DNA from: Piromyces finnis finn
Taxonomy: Eukaryota > Fungi > Neocallimastigomycota
DNA length: 64,000 nucleotides
NCBI GenBank assembly: GCA_002104945.1
Contig: MCFH01000012.1
Location: 248,001-312,000 of the forward strand
Direction: 5' to 3'
Below are positions 1-58,496 of the stretch, in pieces. Under the pieces are notes generated by a model that was not told where the DNA came from, ran no database searches, and saw nothing but the letters and a program-made list of their open reading frames with translations. Each line of letters begins with the position of its first letter. Within the stretch, counting starts at the first letter, position 1. The translations under genes and the position numbers were made by a program.

Positions 1-588
1 ATAAAATAAAATATGTTTTTTAAGAATTTTTTAATAACACTAACCTAATTAAAACTAAGCTAACGTAAGAACTAACTATAAAGCGTTAGTATTGTAAAAG
101 GTTTATTATAATATTAGTTAATAGGTTATTAAATTAGTTAATTAAGTTAGTTATTACCTCTCTATACGAGTTAATAACTAAATAAAGTTTTATAAAAAAT
201 AATAAAAGAAGGAAAATAAATATTATAACACTAAAATAAATATAAACACTTATATAAATATTTTATGAAATAACTTTTACTTAAATAATTATATTTTAAT
301 TATATCTTTTATTTATTAATTATAATTATCTACATTAATTATTATTATAGTTATTAATTTACTTTAATACTAACGCTAAAGTATTTAACGTTAGTTTTGA
401 CTATACTATTTAACTATATGAGTTTATTTTCTTTACCACTTGATTGGGTAAAGCAAATAAACTTCCTATTTAATTAATAACCATTAATATATGGTTATGC
501 ATATATTTGGCCAATAAATGGTGACCAGAATATATGGTTTCAATTGAAATATTTGTGGGCAAACTTATGGCCACAAATATTTCTTACA
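1..588 (-). mobile_element. LTR-like repeat family C (runs off the left edge of the window), inserted into the 5' LTR of element 1
   Basis: 1-545 is the reverse complement of ~30072-30609. On the minus strand it starts TGTAAG at 588 followed by a 13-bp hairpin (546-558/571-583). The other copy ends TTTACA at 30640. Confidence 0.75.
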
Positions 589-1012
589 ATCATAGAAATA
601 AAGAAATTGTCTTAGTGGTTAGTAACTAAGACTTTGGTCCGAATGTCTTGAGTTCGAGACTTCTAAATTACTTTTTTTTATTTTATTTTTATTTTAATTT
701 TTTATTTTGATTTTTTATCAACTCGAAATTCTTTGATTGGTTAAGAAATTTAAGTTGTAAAAAATCTTTTAGATTAATTTTAAAAATTTTTATATAAATA
801 CGAGTGGATTTTTCTAAATTTAAAAAAAAATTGAGTTTTTATTAATTAATAAATTATTGTTAAACACTAACCTATTAAGTTAAAATTTGTGTGTTTTTAA
901 TAATAATTTTAAATATTAATAATTAACAGTAAGATAAAAGTGTTTTATATTTACTAAGTTATTTTAGTAAATTGTTATAAATTTTTTATTGTTAAGAACA
1001 CATTTCTTTACA
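589..1012 (+). repeat. 5' LTR of element 1 (first ~8 bp displaced by LTR-C insertion)
   Basis: Near-identical to 13935-14354 and ends TTTACA. TATA-like TATATAAATA at 791-800. Confidence 0.85.
601..662 (+). promoter_or_regulatory. tRNA-like module (Pol III A-box/B-box) inside the element-1 LTR
   Basis: TAGTGGTTAG (613-622) and GAGTTCGAGAC (650-660) are spaced as in tRNA D and T loops (38 nt from AGTGG to GTTCG). Copies at ~13958-14010 and, diverged, ~42052-42105. No acceptor stem is seen. Confidence 0.55.
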
Positions 1013-1022
1013 ATAAAAACTC
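1013..1022 (+). promoter_or_regulatory. Self-priming (Tf1-type) primer binding site of element 1
   Basis: ATAAAAACTC immediately after the LTR is the exact complement of GAGTTTTTAT (833-842) inside the LTR, ~35 nt downstream of the TATA-like box. There is no TGG tRNA-type PBS. Confidence 0.7.
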
Positions 1023-1799
1023 CTTTATAATAATAGACTTAATACCTTAGTGTTAAAGAATTAGTTATAGATAAAACTTATGTTTTATTATTGAAGCTTT
1101 TCTTTTAAAACATATTAAAAAAAAATATATATATATATAATTAAAATATAAAATAATAAAATAGTTAAAATTTATTATAAAAACAAAACAGAGTATAGCT
1201 AGTAACAACACTTGAGTTGTGGAGGAGGCGCTCAAAGTTATTTTATAAAAATAAAAACTATAATTATTTTATAAATTTTAAATTATTTTTTATTTTTTTT
1301 TGGAACGAAGTTTTTAATAAAACACTTTATTTTTCAAGTTTTCTTGAAAATTAGATTTATTTAATAATATTTTAAAAATATTATATAATAAACTAATATT
1401 GACTTCCTACGCGTCAAAAGTTAGACTTTGATACCATAATACTTTTGCGTTTAGGTATAGTTGAAACACGGGGAAACTAATTTGTTCAATTCTTTCATAC
1501 TAACAAGAGTTAGCTATTATAAAGAATTAAACAATATTACTTCCTATTATCGAAAGATATTAACATTCGACTTTACCTACTTTATCGTAAAAGAGCTAAA
1601 GGAACTCTTAGATATTAATTTATAACAAATTATATATTTGGTGGTCTAACACTATATAATTTGGCATATATTTTTAAATTATTTTAGTTAATAAATATAA
1701 TTGAAGAAAACTTTTTTAATAAAACATCTTTATCTTTTTCTTTTACTTTTAATTCGTTCCATTAAAAAAAAAATATTTTTTATTGGAGGCTTTGTTTAA

Positions 1800-2055
1800 T
1801 TTAATATTGATAATTGAAATATTCTTTTCTTATCAATTTTGAGTTAAACAAATTATATTTCAGCAATAGACAGGCCTTATTGATTTATCAACAGGGGCAT
1901 ATTAGGGGTAATAGTAAGAACCTGAAGCGCGTGACGGAACTTAGATCGCGTGAATAGGGCGACGGAAACATCTATTATCGGACGAAAGACCCTTAATCAA
2001 TAGTCTATTAAATATAATTTGGTCGGTAACTCAATTTGATAATAACAATATTAAA
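1800..2055 (+). ncRNA. Candidate structured RNA motif, copy A (5' leader of element 1)
   Basis: Homologous to 55842-56091 while the flanks are unrelated. Several helices are kept by compensatory or consistent substitutions (see findings). Confidence 0.65.
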
Positions 2056-2143
2056 TTTTCTTTCTTTAATTTTCTTAAAAATATTATTTTCTTTGTATTC
2101 TAATTATAACTTAAATCAATTCAAAATTCATAATTCCAAGACA

Positions 2144-2174
<31 letters not shown>

Positions 2175-2277
2175 CAAGTATAATCTCAAGTTTAAGTGGT
2201 AGTCTAAGCTTCCTAAATCAATTAACAATAATCAAAAGTCAAAGTCAAATAATCTAAGCTTCTAATAATAAGTCAAA

Positions 2278-5200
2278 ATGGATGAAATTAATCAAAACAT
2301 CTTTGACAATGCTGCTCTGAAGGATGGATTTGCTGGGGATAAAAGATTTCTAAAAGGATTCCTGGCCAAGATAGAATTAGTATTTCTTCTTTACCCTGAG
2401 AGATACCAAAATGATGAAACGAAAATTTTATACATTATCTCTCGCTTGTATGGAAATGCCTTGAATTGGGCAGCTACCTTAATCGAAAATCATGATCAAT
2501 GCCTCCTAAACTACGATGCTTTTGTCAGTAGATTAAAAACCTTCTATGGGAACAATGATGAAGTTTTCTTTGCTAACCAAATGCTTAAGAGGGTTAGACA
2601 GAAGAATGTCGGCCGTGCCAACGATTACATCATGGAATTTAATAAATATGCAGATGTTTCCTCTTGGAATGAAGAAGCCAAGATGGATGCTTTTTTGGCA
2701 GGTTTGGTCGACCAAGTTGCTTCACGTATTATTGAGATGTTTCCCGGACCAAAGAATCTTTCTTCTATGCAAACTATTGCTTCTAGGATTGATTCAAGAC
2801 TCGCCGTTAACAAAAAATTCTTTGGTCATAGCAATTCTGAAAACTATAAATCTAGAAGAAATAATAATTTCCCGAAGAAAAGCAATAATAATTCTAATAA
2901 AAATAAGTTTCATGGACCTTTAAGCAAAGCTGAAAAGGACAGAAGAAGAAAAAATAACTTATGTATGTACTGTGGCTCTTCCGATCATTCACTTGATAAT
3001 TGTCCTTTAAAGCAAAAGAAGGATAAATCTTCGAATACTTCCTTTATGTCCATTCCAACTAAACCAATTCGTCCAAGTCAAAGAACTATTGAAAATTCAG
3101 ACTTTGCAAACTTCAAAATTTCCTTTGAAAATTCCGTCCAAATTCTTATTGATTCAGGTTCAAAACTTAATCTAATTGATCGTGCTTATTGTGAAGAGAA
3201 CTCCATCCCTTATTACGATCATTGTGATCTTCCAAAAATTATTGGCATTGGTGGTAATCAGGCAATTTTCGGTATAACTCCACCTCTCAATCTCAAATAT
3301 AAAGATCACGTTTGCAAAACTAACTTCTACGTCACAAACCTCCCAAGGTATTGTTGTATACTTGGTCTTGACTGGTTGATACTTCATAATCCAAGCATCG
3401 ATTTTTCAACAAAGGATATAACTTTCAATTCTAACTATTGTTATTCTCATTGTGTTTCTATTTCTGGTGATTCATTACACTCTTATTCTACATTTACTTC
3501 TAATGAAACTGCTTTTCCTATATTTTCAGTACAATCTCGTAATTCAATTGACCCTTCCTTGAATAATTCTAATACTCAAACAGCACTTCCTATTTTCGTT
3601 TCTTCTAATGAAGAACCCAAGAAATCCGTTAATTCTTTTGTTTCAATCTCGAATACTAGTGCTGATTCTATTAATTCTATATCCAATGACACCAATGTAG
3701 ATCAAAATCCCGACACTCTTAAATCTTCTACAAAATCTGTATTCCTACCTAAAGAACTTGATGAATTTCAAGATGTTTTTAATGAAATATCAGCTAATAA
3801 GCTACCTCCTCACCGTCCGTATGATTGCGAGATTAAACTAAAAGAAAATTCCAAACTTTTTTATGGCCCAATTTATCCTCTAACTGAAACTGAGTCTAAC
3901 GCTTTAGAGGAATATATCAAAGAAAACCTTAGTAAGGGCTTTATCAGAAAGTCTAAATCACCTGCCGGTGCTCCTGTTCTATTCGTCCCTAAGAAAAATG
4001 GTCAACTTCGGATGTGTGTTGACTATCGGCAATTAAATTCAATCACTATACGAGACTCTTATCCGCTTCCATTAATTCAAGATATGTTAGAACACCTCGG
4101 AAAAGGAAAAATATTTTCTAAATTGGATCTTCGTTCAGCTTATAACTTAGTCAGAATTAAAAGCGGTGACGAATACAAAACTGCTTTCACCTGTAAGCTG
4201 GGTCATTTCGAATATTGTGTCATGCCTTTTGGGTTGAAAAATGCTCCTGCGGTTTTTCAACATTTCATCAATGACGTTCTAGAAGAAGTTCTCGGAAAAT
4301 TTGCTTTCTCTTATATTGATGATATAATCATTTTTTCCCAAGATTACGAAAGCCATGTAAAACATGTTAAAACCGTCTTAAAACTCTTAAGATCTGCTGG
4401 CCTCTATGCAAAGCTCGAAAAATGTGAATTTTTCGTTCCGTTTATTGATTTTTTAGGTCATAGAATTTCCGCCGATGGTATCCATATGGATCCTAACAAA
4501 GTTTCTTCTATTTTAAATTGGCCTACACCCTCCAATGTTAAAGAAGTTCAATCTTTTCTTGGTCTCGCTAATTATTATAGACGATTTATTCCAAACTTCG
4601 CAAAAATTGCTCATCCATTACATAAACTCTTAAAGAAGAATGTTAAATTTTTATGGACCAATGAAGCACAAGTCGCTTTTGACACTCTTAAGTCACTATT
4701 TGTCTCTGCTCCTGTTCTTATTTTTCCTAATCGAGATCTACCATTTATTGTCGAGACCGACTCAAGTAATTTTGCTATAGGAGCAATCCTCTCTCAAGTT
4801 TCTCCTAGTGATAATATGACTCATCCGGTTGCTTTCTTTTCTCGTTCACTTACTGGTCCTGAACGAAATTATCCTATTTACGACAAAGAACTCCTCGCTA
4901 TTGTCGCAGCTCTGGAAACTTGGCGTCACCTTCTCAAAGGTTCTACTTCTACTTTTAAAATATACTCGGATCATAGAAATCTCCTTTACCAAAAGAAACC
5001 AGAAAAGATGTCTCAACGTCTTGTCCGCTGGGCTCTATTTCTTTCTGAATTTAACTTTGTTATTATTTACCGTTCTGGCTCTTCTAACGGTAAACCTGAT
5101 GCTCTTTCCCGTCGCTCTGATTATGCCGCTAATTCAAATCCTTCATCCGATATTCCTTTCAATGTTTTACGTCCTGAAAATTTTTGTGCTATTGTAACTT

Positions 5201-6633
5201 CAGTGTCTACCATAAGTGATTCTTTCCTCTCCGAATACAATAACGATGAACTCTATAATAAAATTTGTGATTACCTCGATTGTAGGAAGCCTCCAATTCC
5301 TCACCCCCAAATCGACAAATTTTCTCTAAGTAATAGCTTTCTCCTTTTTGCTGATCGCATTTACGTTCCTTCCAAATGCCGCCTCTCTATTCTTAAACTT
5401 TGTCATGATTCTCCTTCCGCTGGTCACTTTGGCATTAAAAGAACTATTTCTCTTATTTCTAGAGATTTTTGGTGGCCTTCACTTACAACCGATGTTAAAA
5501 ACTACGTTCGCTCTTGTGAAACCTGTTGCCGTTCAAAAAATTCCCATCATAAACCTTACGGTCTCCTTAACCCCCTTGAAATAGCCGATCGACCTTGGTC
5601 TTCTATTTCAATGGATTTTGTTACTGATCTTCCTTCTTCATCTGGTTACACTTGTATTCTGGTAACTATCGATCGTCTTACTAAAATGATTCATCTTATC
5701 CCATTTAAAGGTATTCCTTCTGCATCAGAAACAGCTTCCGCTTTCATTGATAATATATTTCGTCTTCATGGGTTACCTTCTTCTATTATAACTGATAGAG
5801 GTTCTCAATTTACCTCCAAATTTTTCCAATCTATTTGTTCTTCCCTTTTTATTGATCTTAAGTTTTCTTCTCCATTCCATCATCAATCAAATGGTCAGAC
5901 GGAGAGGGTAAACTCCGTTATTGAATAATACTTAAGATGCTTCTCAAACTATAAAGGGTCCGATTGGAAAAATTTTCTTAGTCTTGCTGAATTCAGTTAT
6001 AATAATTCAGTTCAAGAATCATCAAAAATTTCACCATTCTTTGCAAACTACGGTTTCCATCCAAGACATTCACCAATTATTCCAGACCAATCAAATGTTC
6101 CAAGAGCAGAAGAATATACAAAAGATTTTAAGTCCTTGATTAATACTCTTAAAGAAAACTTAAAAGCTGCTATCGAGTCCCAAAAGAAGTATGCTGATAA
6201 ACTCAGGAAAGACGCACCAAAATTCATTGTTGGAGATATGGTTTGGTTAGATAGTTCTTTAATTATACACAAAGGAAACAAAAAATTCAAACCAAGAAAA
6301 CTCGGTCCATTTAAAATTTCAAAGAAAATCTCTGATGTTTCATTTAAACTTAACCTTCCGAAGTCAATAAAAATACATCCTGTTGTCCACGTCTCCAATC
6401 TCGAACCATATTTCAAGGATAAATTCGAAAGATCACAACATCCACCGCCACCCATCATTGTTGACAACGAAGAAGAGTATGAAGTTGAAGAAATTCTAGA
6501 TAAAAGGAAACATTACGGAAAAACTCAATATTTGATAAAATGGAAAGGATACTCTATCAACGAGGCTTCATGGGAACCTGAAGAAAATCTCAATTGTGAA
6601 GAATTACTCAAGAAATTTAATGAAAACAAATGA
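2278..6633 (+). pseudogene. Ty3/Gypsy gag-pol (Gag, CCHC, protease, RT, RNase H, integrase, chromodomain) with one premature stop at 5926-5928
   Basis: CMYCGSSDHSLDNC; LIDSGS; YIDDIII; VETDSSNF; HDSPSAGH..CETC; after the TAA (IE*YLRC) the same frame continues to [12 protein letters not shown]...YLIKWKGY...SWEPEENL. Confidence 0.93.
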
Positions 6634-6813: not shown

Positions 6814-7707
6814 CACTCAATTAAATATTTAATAAATTAGTCTAGTTCTTTTCGATTCGTCTGGTATCCGAATCCTCGAGGAGTGTAAAATATTGTATTA
6901 GTTAAATGTATTAGTTAAATAATGTATTTAATACGTATGTAGAACAATGTATAATGTATTGAATTAATGTACCGTAAATTTTACAAAAATTTACATCACA
7001 ATACATTAACATAAATTTATGTAAATTTAATTTTATGATAAGATAAAGTTTTGATGATAAAATAAAATTTTAAAATTAAATAATTTTTAACCAATAAATA
7101 TTTGAGATAAGAAAAAATTTTTTTTTATAAACTAAGCCTCAAAATTAGAAATAAATAAATTAAATATATGTTTGAAATATAATCAACCATATAGTAAATA
7201 AATCAAAACTTTATTTTAAGTTTAGAAAATTCTTTAGTAAATAAATTGAATTTAAATAGTTTAATACAAATAATTTCTTTTAATAAATGTATAAATGTAA
7301 ACAATGTAAAATTATAATATTAAAACATGTATATTAGAATTAATTCAATTTATTTAAAAAGTATAAATAAAGAAAATTTCTCAACTATTGAAACGATAGT
7401 TGGAAAATAGTAATTAATTACAATTGTATAATTAGTATTAATAATATTAGATTATTAATAAAGTTTATAATAAAACATTTCTATTTAATTAAAAACTGAT
7501 TACCTAGCGAAGGCTCTGGTTAAATAACCTTCGTGGTAAAGTAATCAGCAGTTGTCATAGTTTCAAGGATAAATTTATTATTTAAATAAATAAAAAAGTA
7601 TTAAAAAATAAATTGGAATTTTTTTTGTTTTGTATTGTTGTTTTGTTAGCACAGACCTAAATCCAATAATTTAATTTAAAGGTTAGATTTAAATTAAATA
7701 TTTTACA

Positions 7708-7718
7708 ATTTTCCAACT
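7708..7718 (+). promoter_or_regulatory. Self-priming PBS of element 2
   Basis: ATTTTCCAACT directly after the LTR is the perfect 11-nt complement of AGTTGGAAAAT (7398-7408), ~35 nt downstream of TATAAAT. Confidence 0.8.
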
Positions 7719-7828
7719 TTTTAGAATAGTGGATTTACCTTTGTGTGGGAAATAAAAAAAAAAAAAAAAAAAAAAATTTAAATAGTGAGAATTTAATATT
7801 AGAATTAAATTCGGGGATATATATATGG

Positions 7829-7867
<39 letters not shown>

Positions 7868-7974
7868 GATTTTAGAATAGAAAGGAATTTGTAGGATTTG
7901 GATAATCGAGGATTAAAATTTTGGAAATAAGGAATAGTTTAGATTGTATTGTTTGGTGGATAATATATTTTAGT

Positions 7975-10900
7975 ATGAACGGGGAATATAGGTATATCGA
8001 CAACTGTAATGGTAATGGAGTAGCTGGAATCAGTGACGACGATTCTGAGGCTAGCTCCATGGAAATAGAACATGAGGATGGCGAAATCGTCAACGCCAGG
8101 GATAACCTCATACCAAGACCACCGAAGTTTTATGGAAAAAGGAATGAGTTAGCAAGTTTCTTTGCTAAACTCGAAAAATATTTCAAGTATAATCTAAGAC
8201 AGAATGCTACCGAAGCTTACAAGATTGATGTACTTAGTTGCTATTTAGAAGGACCCGCCGCCGAATGGTATGCCGACTTGGAGAAAGAAGAAAGCCCTTT
8301 AATAAAATCTTATGAAGACCTTAAAGCCGCAATGCAAGCAAGGTACCGAACGTGCACGAGTTCTGATGTGGCTAATAGAAGATTAACGAAGCTCAACTAC
8401 AAGCAATTCAAAAGTGTGATGGATTACTGCGACTGTTTCGAAAAAACCTCTAGGGACTCGTCTTTTGACGATGAAGCCAAGATACATTTCTTTGTAGAAG
8501 GATTGCCGCCGTCTGTTCAGGAGAAGACAAAACTAGTATATCCTAAGATAAGAAAGCTGTATGATCTAATCAATACTGTAGCTGCCAATATTGAGGAAGA
8601 CTGGAGAATCTACGGAAAGGACCCAATGAATATAGATGGAGAAAGAGGAAGAAGATATAACCGGAATCTAGGAAAGCGACTCTACCAAGGGAATTATGGG
8701 ATGAAATTCAACAACTACCGAGACTTTCATCACGAGGAAAAAGTACAAAAGACCAAGAAATACTTCATTTGTAAATCAACAGGACATTTGAAGAAGGATT
8801 GCCCAATGCTCAAAGATAAATTGGCAAACCGCCCAAAAGCATTCATGATCAAGGAAAACAGAAAACAGCACTTGTTGAATGTTTTCGATGTTGTACTTCA
8901 TGTCAATCGAGGAATCTCACTAAATGCGTTAGTTGACTCAGGATCCGACTTGGAATTCATGGATTGGAAAACGGTCAATAAATATAGAATACCAATCCAA
9001 AGAATGATGAAAGACAAGTTTGTGGAAGGACTGGGAGGAAATGGATTACTGAAGTATGAAACAATCCCGTTGATCATGTCTATCGGCAATCACAAGGAGT
9101 CTATTCAATTTTATATTACGACTCTACCTTCAGACGTATCACTTATTTTAGGAAATAAATGGCTAAGAAAACATGATCCGATTATCAGTTTTAAGAATCA
9201 AAAATTAGAGTTTAAGTCTGAATTTTGTAAGACGAATTGTTGCGCTACTGATGAAGAAATAAATGAAAGAATTGAACAAAATAAATTAAAAGAAGAGGAA
9301 GATAAAAGAAAGAGATTAGAGTTAGCTGAAGAAATTATTAATAATTATAAGAATAGTTTAGTTATTAGAGATAGTAAACTTAAAAATAAAGAAAATGTAT
9401 TAGTAATAGAAAAGAAAAAGAAAAAGTCATGTATAAATAAAAAATGTAAAACATCAAAATTAAATAAAATTCTTCATCAAAAATACTTAGTATGTTGTGC
9501 GATTACAAGTGATAATGATGGTACACCTGAAGTCCCAAATGAATACAAAGAATTTAAAAATGTATTTGATGAAATTGAGTGTAATGAGTTACCTCCTCAT
9601 CGAATATATGACTGTAAGATTAAATTAAAGGATGATAATGAATTATTTTATGGACCATTATATCCTCTAACCGAGGAAGAGAGGGAAACGTTAAAGGAAT
9701 ATTTAAAAGAAAATCTAGAAAAAGGATTCATAAGACCCTCAACTTCACCTGCTGGAGCACCTGTACTGTTCGTTAGGAAAAAGGATGGAACTTTAAGATT
9801 GTGTGTTGACTACCGAAGACTCAATGAAAACACAATTAGGGATTCATATCCGTTACCTCTTATATCCGAATTATTCGATAGGTTAAGAGAAGCTAAAATT
9901 TTTACTAAACTTGATCTCAAGTCTGCTTATAATCTAGTCCGAATAAATAAAGGCGATGAATATAAAACTGCATTTAGGACAAGATTCGGTCACTTTGAAT
10001 ATCTTGTCATGCCGTTCGGATTAAAAAACGCTCCTGCAACCTTCCAACATTTTATCAATGATGTCCTCGGGGAATATTTGGATGAATTCGCGTTTTCTTA
10101 TATTGATGATATTCTTATCTATTCAAAAGACTTAGAAGAACACCGAACTCACGTAAAGAAAGTCCTTAAAAAATTACAAGAAAATGGGTTATATGTAAAA
10201 TTAAGCAAATGCGAATTTGAAACGAATAAAACGTCATTTTTAGGTCACATAATTTCGGACAAGGGCATCTCCATGGATCCAAAGAAGGTAGAAGCAATTA
10301 TGAATTGGCCAATTCCAAAGACTGTAAAGGAAGTTCAATCATTTTTGGGTTTATGCAATTACTATAGAAGATTCATTCCGAACTTTGCAGAAATAGAGAA
10401 ACCTTTGCACAATCTAACAAAGAAAAATGTAGTTTTTGACTGGACTATAATTTGTAATAATGCTTTTGAGAAGTTAAAGCAGTGCTTCACTGAAGAACCA
10501 ATTTTAGTACATGCCGATCCAGAATTACCTTATATAGTGGAAACTGATGCTAGTGATTTTGCAATTGGTGCAGTATTATCTCAAAGATTAAACAATAAGG
10601 AACTACATCCAATTTGTTATTTTTCAAGAGGACTTACTAAGTCAGAAAAGAACTATCCGATCTACGATAAAGAATTATTAGCGGTTATATGTGCACTTAA
10701 AGAATGGAGACATTATTTGGAAGGAGCTAAGCATCAATTCACTGTGTTTACAGATCACAAGAATCTTACCTTTCCAAGAAAGCCTGAATTATTATCTCAA
10801 AGACAAATTCGATGGAATTTGTTCTTAACTCGTTACGACTTCAAACTCCAATACAGACCAGGAAAAGAGGGAGGAAAACCGGATTCATTTTCAAGAAGAC

Positions 10901-12459
10901 CTGACTTTCAAAAAGAGGAAATTAAAGATGAAGAAACATTTTCATGCTTAACTATAAAAGAAATTAAGGAAAACTTATGTTGTATTGCAATCCAAGGAAA
11001 TCTTAAAGAAGAATTAACCAAAGAAGTTAAAGAAGATACAGAAATACAAGAATTAACAAAAATTCTACAAGGGAATTCTATTGCAAGCAGAAAGTATAAA
11101 AAGCTTATGAAGAACTTTAAATTAAATGAAGAAGGTATTCTTTTGTATAAAGGATTAATTTTCGTACCAACTAAAATGAGAGAAAACATAATTTCAATTC
11201 ATCATGATAATCCAGTTCATGGCCATTTTGGTATTATCAAAACCAAAGAATTAATAACAAGAAATTTCATTTGGTTAAACATGACTCAAGATATAGTAAA
11301 GTATATAGCTTCTTGCAAGACTTGTGGTGCAGCTAAAGACAATCGCCATAAACCTTATGGATTATTGCAACCTCTACCTACTCCTAGTAGACCTTGGTCC
11401 TCGGTATCGATGGATTTCATAACTGATTTACCAAGATCTCATCAGAAAACGGTTATAATGGTTGTGGTTGACAGACTAACAAAAATGGCTCACTTTATTC
11501 CATTCAGAATGATTCCAACTGCTCAAATTGCAGCAGATGTCTTCTTTAGAGAAATTTTCCGATTACATGGATTGCCAGACGAAATTATATCTGATAGAGG
11601 AACGCAATTCACTTCTGAATTTTGGCAACGTTTATGTTGCCTATTAAATATCAAACATAATGTTTCAAGTGCTCACCATCCACAATCCGATGGTCAAACT
11701 GAACGAGTTAATAGCATTCTAGAACAATTCTTAAGATGTTATATCAATAAAAGAAAAGACAACTGGATGAATCTCTTACCTTATGCGGAATTTGCATACA
11801 ATAATACACTACAACAATCGATTAACCAAACACCTTTCTTTGCTAACTATGGTCAAAATCCAAGATTTGATTTAGAAATTCCAGCTGATAGTGGTAATAG
11901 AAGTGCTAACCGTCACGCCTCTCAAATGCAAAACAACATTAAATTTTTAAAGAAAAATTTAGAAAAAGCTAAACAAAGATATAAGAAGTATGCCGATTGT
12001 ATTAGACTTATTGGACCTAAGTTAAAGGTTGGTGATTTAGTTTGGTTAAAGCGTCCTGATTTACTTCCTAAAGGACCTCCTAAATTAACTGATAAAAAAT
12101 TTGGACCTTTTGAAATCATCGAAAAGACTGGACCAGTTTCTTATAAGTTAAGATTACCTGAGTCTTTTAGATGTCATCCTGTTTTCCATATCTCGAATTT
12201 AGAACCTTTTGTAGTGAGAGTAAATAGTGATAATTTGCAACATTCTATCAAGATACCTAATATCGCTACTGATTCATCTGTAGAAAGAATTCCATTGAAA
12301 ATAGTTAGTGAAAAAATTGTCAATGGAATCAAGTATTATTTCATGGTTTGGAAAGATCATCTTCCTTCAGAAAGTTCTTGGCTTAGAGAAGATGAAATTG
12401 AGGACCCTCAAATGATTCAAGAATTTCTTAAACACAAGTCGCTCAGGGGCTCGACTTAA
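7975..12459 (+). CDS. Single-ORF Ty3/Gypsy Gag-Pol polyprotein with degenerate C-terminal chromodomain
   Basis: Uninterrupted ORF, first ATG at 7975. ALVDSGS; YIDDILI; VETDASDFAIG; HHDNPVHGH..CKTC; integrase core; YYFMVWKD...SSWLREDEI. The first Cys of the zinc knuckle reads Tyr (KYFICKSTGHLKKDC). Confidence 0.95.
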   Translation: MNGEYRYIDNCNGNGVAGISDDDSEASSMEIEHEDGEIVNARDNLIPRPPKFYGKRNELASFFAKLEKYFKYNLRQNATEAYKIDVLSCYLEGPAAEWYADLEKEESPLIKSYEDLKAAMQARYRTCTSSDVANRRLTKLNYKQFKSVMDYCDCFEKTSRDSSFDDEAKIHFFVEGLPPSVQEKTKLVYPKIRKLYDLINTVAANIEEDWRIYGKDPMNIDGERGRRYNRNLGKRLYQGNYGMKFNNYRDFHHEEKVQKTKKYFICKSTGHLKKDCPMLKDKLANRPKAFMIKENRKQHLLNVFDVVLHVNRGISLNALVDSGSDLEFMDWKTVNKYRIPIQRMMKDKFVEGLGGNGLLKYETIPLIMSIGNHKESIQFYITTLPSDVSLILGNKWLRKHDPIISFKNQKLEFKSEFCKTNCCATDEEINERIEQNKLKEEEDKRKRLELAEEIINNYKNSLVIRDSKLKNKENVLVIEKKKKKSCINKKCKTSKLNKILHQKYLVCCAITSDNDGTPEVPNEYKEFKNVFDEIECNELPPHRIYDCKIKLKDDNELFYGPLYPLTEEERETLKEYLKENLEKGFIRPSTSPAGAPVLFVRKKDGTLRLCVDYRRLNENTIRDSYPLPLISELFDRLREAKIFTKLDLKSAYNLVRINKGDEYKTAFRTRFGHFEYLVMPFGLKNAPATFQHFINDVLGEYLDEFAFSYIDDILIYSKDLEEHRTHVKKVLKKLQENGLYVKLSKCEFETNKTSFLGHIISDKGISMDPKKVEAIMNWPIPKTVKEVQSFLGLCNYYRRFIPNFAEIEKPLHNLTKKNVVFDWTIICNNAFEKLKQCFTEEPILVHADPELPYIVETDASDFAIGAVLSQRLNNKELHPICYFSRGLTKSEKNYPIYDKELLAVICALKEWRHYLEGAKHQFTVFTDHKNLTFPRKPELLSQRQIRWNLFLTRYDFKLQYRPGKEGGKPDSFSRRPDFQKEEIKDEETFSCLTIKEIKENLCCIAIQGNLKEELTKEVKEDTEIQELTKILQGNSIASRKYKKLMKNFKLNEEGILLYKGLIFVPTKMRENIISIHHDNPVHGHFGIIKTKELITRNFIWLNMTQDIVKYIASCKTCGAAKDNRHKPYGLLQPLPTPSRPWSSVSMDFITDLPRSHQKTVIMVVVDRLTKMAHFIPFRMIPTAQIAADVFFREIFRLHGLPDEIISDRGTQFTSEFWQRLCCLLNIKHNVSSAHHPQSDGQTERVNSILEQFLRCYINKRKDNWMNLLPYAEFAYNNTLQQSINQTPFFANYGQNPRFDLEIPADSGNRSANRHASQMQNNIKFLKKNLEKAKQRYKKYADCIRLIGPKLKVGDLVWLKRPDLLPKGPPKLTDKKFGPFEIIEKTGPVSYKLRLPESFRCHPVFHISNLEPFVVRVNSDNLQHSIKIPNIATDSSVERIPLKIVSEKIVNGIKYYFMVWKDHLPSESSWLREDEIEDPQMIQEFLKHKSLRGST

Positions 12460-13317
12460 GAAGAGGGGAATGTAAAATATTGTATTAGTTAAATGTATTA
12501 GTTAAATAATGTATTTAATACGTATGTAGAACAATGTATAATGTATTGAATTAATGTACCGTAAATTTTACAAAAATTTACATCACAATACATTAACATA
12601 AATTTATGTAAATTTAATTTTATGATAAGATAAAGTTTTGATGATAAAATAAAATTTTAAAATTAAATAATTTTTAACCAATAAATATTTGAGATAAGAA
12701 AAAATTTTTTTTTATAAACTAAGCCTCAAAATTAGAAATAAATAAATTAAATATATGTTTGAAATATAATCAACCATATAGTAAATAAATCAAAACTTTA
12801 TTTTAAGTTTAGAAAATTCTTTAGTAAATAAATTGAATTTAAATAGTTTAATACAAATAATTTCTTTTAATAAATGTATAAATGTAAACAATGTAAAATT
12901 ATAATATTAAAACATGTATATTAGAATTAATTCAATTTATTTAAAAAGTATAAATAAAGAAAATTTCTCAACTATTGAAACGATAGTTGGAAAATAGTAA
13001 TTAATTACAATTGTATAATTAGTATTAATAATATTAGATTATTAATAAAGTTTATAATAAAACATTTCTATTTAATTAAAAACTGATTACCTAGCGAAGG
13101 CTCTGGTTAAATAACCTTCGTGGTAAAGTAATCAGCAGTTGTCATAGTTTCAAGGATAAATTTATTATTTAAATAAATAAAAAAGTATTAAAAAATAAAT
13201 TGGAATTTTTTTTGTTTTGTATTGTTGTTTTGTTAGCACAGACCTAAATCCAATAATTTAATTTAAAGGTTAGATTTAAATTAAATATTTTACAAGGAGG
13301 GCCATGTAACGAATCAT

Positions 13318-13934
13318 TGTCAAAAAGCGATTTTTTATTAAAGAAAAGTGTGGTAAGCACACTAGTTATATTAATTAATAAATATAATACGCTTTCCTAT
13401 TGAAGGCGTAAAGCTAATAATATTTATATAAAGAAATTTAAATAATATTTTTATTTTAGCAATAACTTAATATCAGCATATATTAAGTTATTAAAAATAT
13501 TAAAATTTTTAAAGTTTTAGGTTTTATAGGAGTTTATAAATTTTATTAACTTTAAGTTAAAAAATTACTAACGCTAAAGCTTCGTAATTTTTGTCAATTT
13601 TTGTTCTTTTTATACATGAACAATTTTAATTATTACATTTTTTAATTTTAATTAATTATTGTCTAATTATAAAATATTTAATTTTTATAAATTAATAATT
13701 AATATAATTATTGTAAATAGTTAATAAATTTAAAATAAAATTTTTAATAATAAAATTTTAATAATTTTAAAAATTTAATAATTTCAAATATTAGAAATTT
13801 TATACTTTGAAATTTTTTAATAAAAATTTAAAAAATAAATTTTTTCAAATTTTCAAATTTTCAAATTTTAAAAAAATTTTTAATTTTTTCCATGTGTCCA
13901 AATTTTTTAAATTTTTATATATGTTATTGTGACA
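13318..13934. mobile_element. Solo LTR family A inserted into the 3' LTR of element 1
   Basis: TGTCA...TGACA termini. TSD ATCAT at 13313-13317 and 13935-13939. Homologous copies at 26260-26852 (inverted) and 30889-31486. Confidence 0.9.
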
Positions 13935-14534
13935 ATCATAGAAATAAAGAAATTGTCTTAGTGGTTAGTAAATAAGATTTTGGTCCGAATGTCTTGAGTT
14001 CGAGACTTCTAAATTACTTTTTTTATTTTTATTTTAATTTTTTTTATTTTAATTTTTTATCAACTCGAAATTCTTTGATTGGTTAAGAAATTTAAGTTGT
14101 AAAAAATCTTTTAGATTAATTTTAAAAATTTTTATATAAATACGAGTGGATTTTTCTAAATTTAAAAAAAAATTGAGTTTTTATTAATTAATAAATTATT
14201 GTTAAACACTAACCTATTAAGTTAAAATTTGTATGTTTTTAATAATAATTTTAAATATTAATAATTAACAGTAAGATAAAAGTGTTTTATATTTACTAAG
14301 TTATTTTAGTAAATTGTTATAAATTTTTTATTGTTAAGAACACATTTCTTTACATAAATATCTAATTTTTCTCTCTTGGATAATTAGTAACCATAATATA
14401 TAAATTTAATATAACTATATCTAATTTTTATGGATTATTAGGAACATCTTTTAAAATAAAATAATTCTATCACTATTTATACAAAATTATTATTTTAAAG
14501 TATAATTATAAACAAATATAAACTATTTAATTTA

Positions 14535-53329: not shown

Positions 53330-55300
53330 ATAGTATTTGATGAAAATGGATGATAATAGATTTTATTATTATTATAACCACGGACAATAAAATCTTTATT
53401 TACAAAAAGAGCTTGTCAAAAGCATGGGAGATATTGTCACAGATACAATAAAATCTTTATCTTCCATGCTTTTGACAAGCTCTCTTTGTAAATAACCTGT
53501 AAAGAGGTATTAAGTGAAGTGGAAATAATACCTGCACGACCTGATTTAGAATGGATAAATAATTCTTTGGCTGTAAGTCCTTCGAAGTATTCTCTTTTAA
53601 TAAAACATTCTTGTAATATAGCCTGAGTTCCTAACGATGCTAAAATTTGAATAAGATTATCACCTGATCCTTTTGATCCACTGTTGATAATATTGGTTAA
53701 ATTATTATCAAATACTTCTGCTAATTTTACTAATACATTATGACTATTTAAACATAATTCTTTTAATTTAACATCAACGTGCTTACCCGAAGTTAAAATA
53801 GACGAATCTACATTTGACAAGGTTATTGTCGATAAAGTATCGGGAATCTTTTCCAAAATACAATTAAATTTGTTTTCAAGTTCAGTATCTGAAATGGAAA
53901 TACTTATAATGTGAAATAAGTTATATTCATGAACCATACGTTGTACAGCACGTTACCATAATGAGAAATGGAATTTAACAATTCCGTTTGATTAGCGCCA
54001 TTGATAGTATGAAGTAGAATGCCATGATCTACTAAATATTCGTCATCCATTTTTAAAGTTAGTGATTTTGGAAGCAACAATGAAAGTAAGTGCTTATATG
54101 ATATTTTATTAGTATTTATTCGAGACTTGTAATATTTACAAAATGAATTCCATTTTTTCTTTGATATTTTCAATTTTTACATATATTTTCGAGAATGTGA
54201 GATTTAACAATATGTTCATCTTTTGTCCTATTGTATAAACCAGATAAAGTATCTTGAATAAATTTGATCATAAGTGAACCATCCTTAAATTAACAAAAAT
54301 TATTTTAATGTTTAATTTACTTGCTAACACCCTTTTAGACTCTTCACCTGGAAGCCAAAAAATATTCATTTCATCGCCATCAAAATCAGCTTGAAAACAT
54401 TAGCTATTAGTGGATTGATTTGAATTGTTCGGCTACTACTAGGAAATGATCGAATGGATAATATAGAAGTAGTGTAGATAGTTTATATCCATAAGGAATT
54501 AATTGATCTGTAAATTCTTTTGATATCAATACTTTATCCAAAGGTATATTTATATTTGGTACAATAACACTGCGAAGACAAAAATTTTGTCTTTTAGCTA
54601 AATATCCAAAGGTATATTAATATTTGGTACAATAACACTGCGAAGACAAAAATTTTGTCTTTTAGCTAAACACATACTTATAAATATTCCTGTCTTTCCT
54701 GATAATAATTGTTTAATGAAACTTTTATCTGAACTTTCGGTAGTAGCTTCAGTGGAACTCTGAATTCCAAGAAATTTTTTATATAAATTAAATACCTTTA
54801 ATGCATATCCATTACTGGCATTACCTTTACATGAATGATTTAACTCTAATAATCTTATATAAATGGATGCTATATTGTTATGAATTATAATGTTATTAGA
54901 ATCCATAATAGATAGTCTCATATTTATTGGTAGTACCGGTATGTTTTTACTAAATACATTTAGTAATTTATTCTTTAATTTCTTATTTTTACTGAAATCA
55001 GAAATACGGATTAATTCATGCATCTTTTTAACACTTATCCATTGATTTCCAAAGAAAAATGCATATTTCGATTGGGATTTATTTTCATTTCCTTTATTTA
55101 TATATTTATTCATACTATCATTTGGATAATTATTATTCGTATTATATTTGTGTAATGAAAAAGTAACACTTTTTCATTACACAAATACTTTTACTGATAA
55201 TTTGCAACAATCTAATTCATTTTTAATTATATTACTATATTTTTACAGGTAAGGCATAAGTGACAAAGTTCCTTACATAATGCATTTACAAATAGATAAT
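53330..55300 (-). pseudogene. Divergent, compact RNA polymerase largest-subunit N-terminal/catalytic part (A'-like), frameshifted
   Basis: IPVLPINMR; LSGKTGIF...LAKRQNFCLRSVIVPN; catalytic ADFDGDEMN at ~54364-54390 (a 1-nt insertion restores VFNADFDGD); SGSKGS; EGL..KELFIHSKSGRAGII..GYLQRELVKSMED (bridge helix). 68-bp tandem duplication at ~54535-54670. Confidence 0.88.
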
Positions 55301-55692: not shown

Positions 55693-58496
55693 TGGTGGAG
55701 ATATCATTTAGAGGAGGAAGAAGTTATACAATTTTAATAAATTGTATTATTTATTTTTTTTACATAACATTTTTTTATTTCTGTTTATAGTTATTCATTA
55801 ACTATATTATAAAAAAAATAAAAAAAAATAAATTATTATTATTTAATATTGATAATTGAAGTTTCATTCTTATCAATATTGAATTTAACAAAATCGTGTC
55901 AGCATAAGCAAGACTTACAACTCTCAGAAGGGGTATAGTAAGGGTGGTTTTAAGATCCTGAAGCGTGTGACGAAACTTAGATCACGTGAATAGGATGACG
56001 GAAAAATAAAACATTGGCGGATGAAAGACCCTTAGGTGTGCAGCTTATTATACACATTTTGGTCGGAAATTCAGATAATAACAATATTAAATATTAAAAT
56101 TTGAAAATTTAAGAATACGTTAATAAACAAATAATTAACATACTATTAATTAATTAAAAAAAAAATTTTTTTAAAACCTTAATTATTAAGAAATTGGACT
56201 GCACAAAACTTATTGAAGCTCTTGTGAAAGAAGCCAAGGAAAGAAGAATGGCGGAACTAAATAACTCTATGTTACTACAATACTGCCTAATGACTCTTCA
56301 AGGTATCATCACCTTGACGGATGAAAATCATGACATTAATTTATGGCATGATCAATTCCAGTCTTGATGTCGTATACAAAAGATTACAGTATCTAGGGAC
56401 ATCTACTATTGGTGTCTTATGAGAGTACAAGGAATGGGTGCTGCAGCAATTAGGGATTTAGTACGTACCGACGCTGAGGGTACTACTGTTTATCCATCCC
56501 TTGAAGAAATGAAAGATGCCCTTTTAAGGAAATACAAATTAAAGAAGGACAAAGAAGACATTATCAACGAATTAAAATCTTTAAAAATTTCGTATCAGGA
56601 TAATGTCAAAGAATTCAATAAAAAATATATGAAACTATTCAATGAATTAGGCAAGAACCAACAAACCAGAGTTAAGGCCAATGACTACTTAGACTCCATA
56701 ATTAACCGCACGGACATATGGAGAAGTGTTAAATCGGAGTTTAAACAAAGAAGAATCTCCTTATCGGAAGCCATGGATGCCGTAGAATTCTATGATAAAA
56801 TGAATGAAGAATTAAAGTACAAAACAACTCCGCCCAATAACAACCAAAGAAATAATAGGTCAAATTTTAATTCTTCAAGTTACAATAATAACTTTAATAA
56901 TAATGGATTTAACAGGAATAACTATAATAATAACAATAACAATAATAATAATAACTTTAATGATAGAAATTCTAATCATAAGGTTATTGTTTGCAAATTT
57001 TGTTACGAGAGAGGCCACACGAAGTCGGAGTGTTCTGGATTCACTCAATTCCAATTTCTTAAGTATAAAGATGAACAAATGAGAAATAACTATAATAATT
57101 TTAGCTCAAATTATACTAACTTTAATAATTATCCAGCCAATAGTCAAAATAATTTTTAACCACTCTAGTAATTTTAACTCAAATAAATTTAATTCTAATA
57201 AATTTAATTGTAATAATAACTCTGGATTTAATAACCAAAACTCTAATAATCAAGGTTTTAATAATCAAAATCTTAATAATTCATATTCTAATAATTTAAA
57301 TTTCAATGGTCAAAATTATAATAATTTAGGTTCTACTAATTCAAATTTAATCAAAATTTTAATAATTCTAATTTTAGTAACAGTAACACCAACTTTATTC
57401 CTAATAATTTTGATAATTCTGGTTATAACAATTACTCCTATAGTAATAATCCCTTTAGTAATTCTGCTCCGCTCAGAAACTCCGCTACTAATTACCAAAA
57501 TTATCAAGATAGGAGTTTCAATAATCAGAACTTCTATGAAAATTCTGATATTTTCTCCGATAACGAAGATCATCAAAATGATTCAATGCATTTAAACTAA
57601 TGCAGGAGAGTAAATGCTCTCCCCTAAACCAAAATGCATACCAAGATATGGAAAACTTCTATGTGGATGCCATTAAAAGAAAAGGCACTTCCTTAGAACC
57701 TGGTACTGAAATAAGAAAAGCTAAAAGTAATACCAGGAATAAAACTTCTTTGCAAGGAATGCCAACTAATAGTTCTGAAGATTCTGAATCCGATATGAAG
57801 GAGGATACCTTAAATAGAAAAATTGTAAATCCACACTCCCGTAGTCATTTTCCCAGTAAAAACTCTTACGTGAACCAAAATAGTCCTAATAAGTTAACTA
57901 ATAACTTAATAATAATTCTAACTCTAAAAATTTATTTTCTAATAATTTAAATAATGATAATGTAAACAATAATAATGTAAATGAAATTAATGTAAATGAT
58001 AATAATGTATACAATAATGTAATTAATAATGAAATTATTAATAAAAATTTTAATATTTCAAAGTATATGGAAAAGACTTCTAAAGATTTTACTAAAACTA
58101 GTAGTTTAAAGAATAATAATCCTTCAAAAATTGTTAATAATAATAATTCTTCTAATATTACTAATAAAAATTATAATTCTATTTCTAATGAAATTCCTAA
58201 TAAAAATTTTTCTTCTAATAATTCTAATTCTAATTCTAACACTATTTCTATTAATAATATTAGTACCAATAATTCCATTAATACTAATTCTAAAATTCAT
58301 AATAATTTTAATATTAGTAATTCAAAACCAGTGCAAAATATTAATAATAAAGTTAGATTTAAGGATCCACCGGTATCACCTGATCACAATAATAAATCTG
58401 AAGATCACATGTCTTCTCCTAAAACTAGGAAAGATAGTCATACTATTTTAATTAATAAAAATAATATTGAACCATATAATATAGAGCAAGACTTAG
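55693..58496 (+). mobile_element. Ty3/Gypsy 5' half: tRNA-type PBS (TGGTGGAGAT 55693-55702), leader and gag pseudogene (~56241-58496)
   Basis: PBS after ...TTATATCA; gag with CKFCYERGHTKSEC and Asn-rich segments; EPYNIEQDL linker; cut by LTR-D. Confidence 0.75.
55842..56091 (+). ncRNA. Candidate structured RNA motif, copy B
   Basis: Homologous to 1800-2055 with compensatory changes; ~150 nt upstream of gag. Confidence 0.65.

Follow-up and report, generated by a model that had tools for sequence, protein, structure and literature searches.

The window analysed here is a stretch of 64,000 nucleotides from the anaerobic gut fungus Piromyces finnis (Neocallimastigomycota; assembly GCA_002104945.1, contig MCFH01000012.1, positions 248,001 to 312,000, forward strand). 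In the 5' leaders of two of its Ty3/gypsy retrotransposons lies one sharply bounded element of about 250 nt that folds as an RNA on the gag-coding strand, and it is this leader RNA module that we describe. Copy A sits in a chromovirus (family A), 782 nt 3' of the 5' long terminal repeat (LTR) and 222 nt 5' of the gag ATG. Copy B sits in a second family (B), about 135 nt past the primer-binding site (PBS), with the first ATG (56248) some 157 nt further down and a frameshifted gag with a CCHC knuckle downstream. The two elements are laid out as follows (ORF, open reading frame).

586..1017, + strand: 5' LTR of element A (3' LTR at 13932-14358, 97.2% identical)
1018..2277, + strand: 5' leader of element A, 1260 nt, with a single ATG
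1800..2055, + strand: copy A of the leader RNA module, 256 nt, chromovirus family A
2278..5928, + strand: gag-pol ORF of element A, with Ty3 capsid, reverse transcriptase, RNase H and integrase
6136-6633: chromodomain ORF of element A, after the gag-pol ORF
55693..55705, + strand: PBS-like TGGTGGAGATATC of element B
55842..56091, + strand: copy B of the leader RNA module, 250 nt, family B

The two copies align over their full length (78% identity between lineage representatives), and the alignment has sharp edges, TTTAATATTG at its 5' end and CAATATTAAA at its 3' end. This pair of copies had been pointed out in a first-pass annotation made from the letters of the window, and a hidden Markov model (HMM) built from genomic copies picks out the same two places, 1800-2055 and 55842-56091, and no others within the window. 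The accompanying remark that the flanks do not align is correct for A against B but not for A and two further lineages introduced below, C and D, which share a weaker similarity about 250-400 nt upstream. The broader claim, that a structured sense-strand RNA is shared by the gag leaders of elements whose gag genes are unrelated and whose pol is 33% identical, is what we find as well: the module is a self-contained domain of the sense-strand genomic RNA or gag mRNA of Ty3/gypsy retrotransposons in the Neocallimastigomycota.

The fold is a long irregular hairpin. Stacked helices H1 to H5 lead to a three-way junction from which a side hairpin, Hx, and an apical arm composed of H7, H6, H8 and H9 emerge. 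The covariation model on which this rests contains 65 pairs and, over 30 distinct sequences, 1900 cells. Positions below are those of copy A, followed by window coordinates, which are obtained by adding 1799; a two-sided pair is one in which both partners have changed.

1-10/247-256 (window 1800..1809/2046-2055), + strand: H1, 10-bp closing stem, 98.7% paired, no two-sided change
31-37/237-243 (window 1830..1836/2036-2042), + strand: H2, 4 two-sided pairs, 99.6% paired
40-47/228-235 (window 1839..1846/2027-2034), + strand: H3, 4 two-sided pairs
52-59/213-220 (window 1851..1858/2012-2019), + strand: H4, 5 two-sided pairs, with further types in lineages E and F
66-72/204-210 (window 1865..1871/2003-2009), + strand: H5, 2 two-sided pairs
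75-79/95-99 (window 1874..1898), + strand: Hx, side hairpin (GCCTT...GGGGC), one-sided changes (U-G/U-A, G-C/G-U), also in the minimum free energy (MFE) structure
104-109/191-196 (window 1903-1908/1990-1995), + strand: H7, G-U/A-U/G-C, all one-sided, 98.9% paired
110-115/173-178 (window 1909-1914/1972-1977), + strand: H6, stacked on H7, 4 two-sided pairs
1978-1989 (window), + strand: 12-nt bulge UCGGACGAAAGA (UCGGAYGAAAGA) on the 3' side between H6 and H7
122-124/158-160 (window 1921-1923/1957-1959), + strand: H8, in the apical arm 1921..1959
128-132/148-152 (window 1927-1931/1947-1951), + strand: H9, 2 two-sided pairs, 15-nt loop UGACGGAACUUAGAU
2020..2026 (window), + strand: unpaired invariant UGGUCGG, on the 3' strand between H4 and H3 (invariant run 221-227); its GGUC is the 3' strand of the P7 proposed in the first-pass annotation

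Standard pairs fill 97.0% of the 1900 cells, and two-sided changes occur at 21 of the 65 pairs, a number that none of 500 shuffles reached. When the 3' partners were slid by one to three columns as a control, pairing fell to 35-43% and the two-sided pairs to between one and five. An out-of-sample lineage, F, was found once the model had been fixed; it keeps 61 of the 65 pairs, seven of them with two-sided changes relative to A. Most of the helices are recovered independently by RNAalifold, and the MFE structure of copy A, which reproduces most of the covariation model, has an energy of -65.2 kcal/mol against -43.1 for shuffles (z -5.4). The two-sided changes are located in H2, H3, H4, H5, H6 and H9; H1 is nearly invariant, and Hx, H7 and H8 show one-sided changes only (G-U to A-U or G-C). 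The structural strength is in runs of consistent neighbouring pairs, together with the lineage F test. H2 reads TTATCAA/TTGATAA in A and TTACTG/CAGTAA in C, and H5 reads AATAGAC/GTCTATT in A and ATAAGC/GCTTAT in B, its outermost pair being confined to family A. Many of the pairs are G-U, which on the opposite strand would be A-C, so the fold belongs to the gag-coding strand. Helices are kept as pairings while several unpaired stretches are kept as sequence: UAAUUGAA, GGAAC, AGAU, GAAUA, GAAAGA and UGGUCGG are unpaired and invariant in six lineages. Copy B itself has a few pair-breaking changes relative to its relatives (L032-L034).

Several of the helices had been proposed from the two window copies. 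The closing stem (TTTAATATTG/CAATATTAAA) is a real helix, as is the compensatory TTGAGTTA/TAACTCAA versus TGAATTT/AAATTCA, which covaries in the enlarged alignment. Two other helices lie where they had been placed but in another register. The hairpin given as CGCGUGA/UCGCGUG, the P5 of the group I reading discussed below, exists, and its conserved form is G-CGCG/CGCG-U, with two two-sided pairs (G-C, A-U and U-A at one, C-G and U-A at the other). For CCUG/UAGG, the P4 of that reading, pairing is present at that place, but CCU/RGG, shifted by one, is paired in 97.5% of cells against 87%. Five helices, H2, H4, H5, H6 and Hx, lie beyond the set first proposed. The least certain part of the fold is the H7/Hx junction. 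RNAalifold offers another partner for CCCUUA, with a single compensatory event in its favour and three single changes against it; we prefer H7 with Hx. An all-against-all search for column covariation that might reveal pseudoknots returned hundreds of lineage-driven pairs from the roughly seven lineages, and we claim no tertiary pair.

The first-pass annotation went further and read into this RNA the core of a group I intron. The module does not belong to group I or GIR1, and its fold is not that of a group I ribozyme. With Rfam 15 we found no match to group I (RF00028), GIR1 (RF01807), small ribozymes, internal ribosome entry sites (IRESs), elements for nuclear expression (ENEs), exonuclease-resistant RNAs (xrRNAs) or constitutive transport elements (CTEs), either at gathering scores over the window or at E<=10 in 361-nt stretches around each copy; permissive scans gave chance matches only (Plastid-psbA-3, MESTIT1_3 and icaR, all E>5). 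The proposed P3 (UAAG/CUUA) is not conserved, being paired in 84% of cells with its first pair broken in 15 of 29 sequences, including all of family C, and its P3' strand overlaps H7, which fits better. (One copy, L039, was at one time counted in favour of P3; its alignment register had been misread.) P7 (GACC/GGUC) can pair in 97.5% of cells and shows no two-sided changes. The group I order breaks down at P8, because the segment from P3' to P7' (copy A positions 204-220) is made up of the 3' strands of H5 and H4, whose partners lie at 52-72, 130-170 nt upstream, and which between them contain seven two-sided pairs. To form P7 across H4 and H5, a single nucleotide would have to bridge 15 bp, which appears sterically implausible. 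The A-rich internal loop likened to J4/5, in our model GAA/GAAUA between H8 and H9, is lost in lineage F, with near-continuous pairing in its place. Scored on the same alignment, the only one of the first-proposed pairings to covary is H3, which is common to both models.

One could still imagine a ribozyme, whether a group I-derived core that splices, cleaves or caps as a lariat, or an unrelated new self-processing RNA. Such a reading would draw on the large, intricate fold with its invariant unpaired nucleotides, on the pairable GACC/GGUC, and on a GAAA bulge and CCUGAAG...AAUAGG loop that, on reading, faintly resemble a tetraloop and its receptor. On reading, however, neither the 11-nt receptor nor the hammerhead, K-turn or sarcin-ricin motif fits, and the CUGAAG...GAA stretch lacks the A9 of a hammerhead. 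Neither P1, P2, P6, P9, P10 nor splice sites were found in the element. A spliced intron would be lost on retrotransposition, as was remarked at the outset, yet all the copies examined have kept the module. It is also found in low-depth contigs of three runs guessed to be RNA, in which RNA ends are not visible; in one contig B-type flank extends for at least 255 nt to either side, and no joint removes the module, which lends weak support. Together with the absence of Rfam matches, the broken P3, the static P7, the occupation of the P8 region by covarying helices and the loss of the J4/5-like loop, these observations make a ribozyme highly improbable. Catalysis of any kind seems to us very doubtful, and nothing specific favours an unknown ribozyme class. 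There is a slim chance that the module is a new RNA machine spreading as a cassette among gut-fungal retrotransposon families, either as an unrelated self-processing ribozyme that would create a new gag mRNA 5' end just past an upstream run of A residues (described below), or as a direct engager of ribosomes. The other roles originally put forward, IRES and packaging, are more likely than a group I core.

Copies were sought across the 56.46-Mb, very AT-rich genome (232 contigs). DNA searches with copy A and with copy B each gave at least 40 matches; a motif pattern hit 46 places, 45 of which are copies; and the core covariance model gave 51 matches, the weakest being a decayed A-like copy. Among the loci whose flanks were read, to which the assignment of contexts is limited, the copies fall into four Ty3/gypsy contexts (A, B, C and C'), all in sense-strand 5' leaders. 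Family C is the most numerous. In one complete copy, which has 718-nt LTRs 99.6% identical and separate gag and pol ORFs, the leader is 1544 nt long; the module lies 956 nt past the LTR, with the gag ATG 337 nt further on. C' is sister to C and differs from it in its upstream flank. Being a sense-strand structure between PBS and gag, and present in a copy with such closely matching LTRs, the module has the properties of a cis-acting leader RNA. Outside P. finnis, Anaeromyces robustus has a copy (L065) 470 nt before a C-like gag, and GCA_016295295.1 has one 495 nt before a C-like gag (L049, lineage D) and one 98 nt before an A-like gag (L086, lineage F). A pattern scan of metagenomes matched seven stretches, of which only L049 has the module. 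Using the core covariance model and the full-element HMM, we did not find it 1-3 kb upstream of related gags in Piromyces sp. E2, two Neocallimastix species, a second Anaeromyces locus or rumen metagenome contigs. The PBS-like motif TGGTGGAGATATC is common to B (55693-55705) and C (5052-5071 of C2, the reverse complement of L061+L062), where it follows directly on the 5' LTR.

The module has also been exchanged between families. Between A and C, pol is 33% identical and the Gag proteins share only the zinc knuckle, while the Gags of C and D are 55% identical and C, C', D and E all have C-like Gag. Modules are 73-85% identical between lineages and 93-100% within them. Their maximum-likelihood tree is (E,(D,B)) versus ((F,A),(C,C')), its main split supported at 96/95, and it disagrees with gag type. 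The 3' edge of the module is identical in all lineages and the 5' edge in B, C' and E, which upstream share nothing past the closing stem. A, C and D, in contrast, share the weaker upstream similarity mentioned above.

1438..1677, + strand: upstream leader block common to A, C and D, best at 1623-1672, TTGGTGGTCTAACACTATATAATTTGGCATATATTTTT

This block is 66% identical over 255 nt between A and C and 84% over 50 nt between A and D, at equivalent positions. Its counterparts are at about L055 9000-9260 (- strand) in family C and about L049 1850-2150; it includes TTGGTGG-N-TCTAACACTATATAATTTGGCCTATATTTTT (TATA-like) and precedes the module by 120-360 nt. B, C' and E lack it. These figures come from flank-only comparisons, because AT-rich noise drowned the signal when whole leaders were compared by permissive blastn. 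The module has moved between families at least twice. On the simplest reading of these sequences, it is old in the group with C-like Gag and would have been transferred once, with part of the upstream leader, to A-type chromoviruses and, a second time, to family B. F groups with A, so the first of these transfers would predate the divergence of the two genomes. Template switching between co-packaged RNAs is presumably how it occurred. It had been noted early on that a recent DNA-level swap of leaders could account for the similarity of the two copies. A swap did occur, at the level of DNA or RNA, but it was not recent: the modules have diverged by 15-27% with their pairings kept, which argues for a selected structure.

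Could the module instead be a mobile element at the DNA level, a miniature inverted-repeat transposable element (MITE) that inserted independently into several leaders? Its sharp edges and the perfect 10-bp inverted repeat TTTAATATTG/CAATATTAAA at its ends are what one would expect of such an element. Yet no solitary copy exists among the loci read, all of them lying in retrotransposon leaders on the gag strand, and the flanking bases show no target-site duplication. G-U pairs are kept though they would be mismatched on the other strand and in DNA, and the internal helices, which a MITE would not need, covary. We consider this explanation almost certainly wrong.

What the module does may be approached through the leaders in which it is found. 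Leader A has one ATG in 1260 nt, where 10-21 are expected and the minus-strand control has 11; leader C has three in 1544 nt, against 23-32 expected and 12 in the control. Lineage D has two in the 1000 nt before the module and none in the 495 nt after it, and lineage F has one in the 1009 nt before gag. Past the module, the first ATG comes at 98-495 nt; in A, C, D and F it starts gag, and in B it apparently does so too. Depletion of this kind, on the sense strand only, indicates that ribosomes scan these leaders, and a hairpin of about -65 kcal/mol in the scanning path would call for bypass, unwinding or regulated use. A second recurrent feature is a run of A residues just upstream.

1764..1773, + strand: A-run, A10, 26 nt 5' of the module (10-24 nt long in other A copies)

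Runs of 10 to more than 100 nt lie 13-45 nt upstream of the module in A, B (55811-55828), C, C', D and F; as a background, a run of this kind occurs within 60 nt upstream of only about 1% of window positions. Copies of one family differ in run length, from 10 to 24 nt in A and from 18 to 43 in C; in F (L086:541-641) it exceeds 100. Further A-runs occur in retrotransposon leaders of the window at 2147-2175 and 7750-7865. They may thus be a feature of leaders in general, for example as places for poly(A)-binding protein to land or as traces of reverse-transcriptase slippage.

The leaders contain two other small features. In the bulge region, B, C', D and E have a four-codon upstream ORF, AUG AAA GAC YCU UAG, and A and C have ACG in place of its AUG.

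Module 182-196 (window 1981-1995; copy B 56020-56034): upstream ORF site

Family C has a tandem duplication of a roughly 30-nt hairpin-like unit, GTGGTCGATAAAGGAATTTCGA(G/A)CTT, between module and gag (L055 8395-8480, - strand), of which C' has one copy.

As the capsids of the carriers are unrelated and their pol is 33% identical, the partner they have in common should come from the host, and the module most probably acts in cis through host machinery. Our tentative proposal, to which we give somewhat less than an even chance, is that it controls translation of gag. Ribosomes loaded on the AUG-depleted leader of 1.2-1.5 kb, or on the A-run, would be helped by the module to reach the gag AUG, whether by a shunt-like bypass, by recruitment of initiation factors in an IRES- or enhancer-like manner with the A-run, or by gating between translation and packaging. 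The sense-only depletion of ATGs, a stable fold that would hinder plain scanning and the A-run in six lineages all suit such a role. Other observations weigh against it. Depletion upstream speaks against a classical IRES, which would not need it, and the variable distance to the gag ATG means that the module cannot position a ribosome on the start codon. Related families lack the module, lineage F has lost one conserved internal loop, and E is without the second GACGG motif. All Gag proteins concerned have a CCHC knuckle, so that a common role in binding nucleocapsid is possible. As to the structure itself, with only about seven independent lineages single-pair covariation is weak, and the evidence for H1, Hx, H7 and H8 consists of one-sided changes or invariance.

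That shared knuckle leads to a second candidate role, a packaging or dimerisation signal in which purine-rich unpaired loops would be presented to the CCHC nucleocapsid part of Gag to select genomic RNA. The position between PBS and gag is the classical one, the long irregular hairpin has invariant G/A-rich unpaired stretches, the Gags of A, B, C and D carry the knuckle, and on reading the Hx loop there are short palindromes in B (UUGCAA) and E (GUUAAC). But these palindromes are not conserved across lineages, and family C has a small duplicated hairpin of its own closer to gag. A specific packaging signal would normally co-evolve with the Gag it serves; the module, in contrast, is common to families with otherwise unrelated Gag, has been exchanged between them and is absent from close relatives of family C. 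We therefore regard packaging as possible but unlikely. Less likely again is some other dealing with host factors, such as protection from 5'-3' decay or silencing, or nuclear export or localisation of unspliced genomic RNA, possibly with the A-run. Its exchange between families suggests independence from element proteins, the association with A-runs is recurrent, and conserved unpaired motifs would fit a platform for protein binding. Against this, there is no match to ENE, xrRNA, CTE or any other Rfam family, and by reading we see no pair of U-rich strands able to clamp the A-run. The rest of the probability belongs to something we have not considered. Control of gag translation remains the function we would put forward.

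A few further observations concern individual elements. Element A has a second chromovirus nested in its 3' part (window 6880-12766; ORF 7921-12459, 1512 aa), and the LTR starts of this nested element are 100% identical over at least 300 nt. In one family C copy (L010/L055, G000:C208) another LTR element, with 608-nt repeats 100% identical, is inserted in the leader 417 nt upstream of the module. We rejected this copy as the family C reference because the apparent end of homology at 417 nt is that inserted element, and substituted a clean copy. L058 3620-4180 (G000:C156, with three similar places within 13 kb) is a rearranged junction: the 3' LTR of a family C element breaks off after its first 229 nt or so and runs straight into a C'-type module, beyond which come about 105 nt more and then unrelated DNA. 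An ORF of 166 aa beside retrotransposon debris, at window 53437-53937 (- strand), weakly matches the Pfam domain RNA polymerase Rpb1 domain 4 (E 2e-6).

Cis-acting leader RNAs of retroelements are known as a kind. By its lack of any Rfam match this RNA family is new, and our search of the literature found no description of it. It is a structured sense-strand RNA with a cassette-like distribution, exchanged between families and placed in a scanned leader. As a rule, the structured leader of an LTR retroelement belongs to that element and its Gag alone; the 250-nt fold described here, strongly supported by covariation, is common to families with unrelated Gag in at least two fungal genera. Such sharing is unusual and, to our knowledge, has not been described for retrotransposons, and the pattern points to a host-directed function. 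With the module, Rfam would gain a new family from a fungal phylum that is extremely AT-rich and little studied; the module also offers a natural marker of recombination between retrotransposon families. If its function proves to be translational, it would also serve as a portable expression element for anaerobic fungi, where genetic tools are scarce.

It is useful to set the module beside systems that it resembles in part. Group I introns and GIR1 are of similar size, and the possible 4-bp GACC/GGUC is like P7 and the A-rich internal loop beside a hairpin like theirs; they differ in the points discussed above, from the covariance-model match that the module lacks and its unconserved P3 to a P8 region given over to other helices and the absence of splice sites or excision. 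ENE-type triple-helix elements act with genomically encoded A-rich tracts in plant and fungal transposon RNAs, and the module too is a structured element of transposon RNA regularly near an A-run. Here, however, the A-run lies 5' and not 3', the module is part of the 5' leader where ENEs occupy the 3' end, Rfam gives no match, and the covariation model holds one pyrimidine-rich strand only (UUCUUUUCUU, positions 23-32) with no U strand opposite.

Closer in setting are the leaders of other reverse-transcribing elements. Leader domains of retroviruses and LTR retrotransposons (Psi and the dimerisation initiation site, DIS; the 5' structures of Ty1 and Ty3) serve dimerisation and packaging, and a paper on purine loops in mouse mammary tumour virus belongs to this literature. 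The module shares with them its location between PBS and gag, irregular stem-loops, unpaired purine-rich motifs and a CCHC Gag. It differs in that those domains are private to one element and its Gag, whereas the module spans unrelated Gags, and close relatives lack it. The cauliflower mosaic virus 35S leader has a ribosome-shunt hairpin and many short ORFs, one of which must end just before the stem. It too is the long leader of a reverse-transcribing element, with one large elongated hairpin on a strong conserved base and the main ORF downstream. The leaders described here, in contrast, are almost free of AUG and have no short ORF before the stem, and shunting would leave the conserved apical loops unexplained.

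The nearest parallel may lie with viral translation elements. HCV-like IRESs (hepatitis C virus) are common to flaviviruses and diverse picornaviruses, and the 3' cap-independent translation elements (CITEs) of plant viruses are likewise exchanged as modules. The differences are plain: the carriers here are fungal LTR retrotransposons with an AUG-depleted upstream leader, the role is proposed from sequence alone, and no Rfam IRES matches, which bears on membership and not on IRES-like working. What the module has in common with these viral cassettes is the pattern itself, namely a discrete structured unit with sharp edges, placed upstream of the first ORF, whose carriers have unrelated or distant proteins and whose phylogeny disagrees with that of the coding regions.

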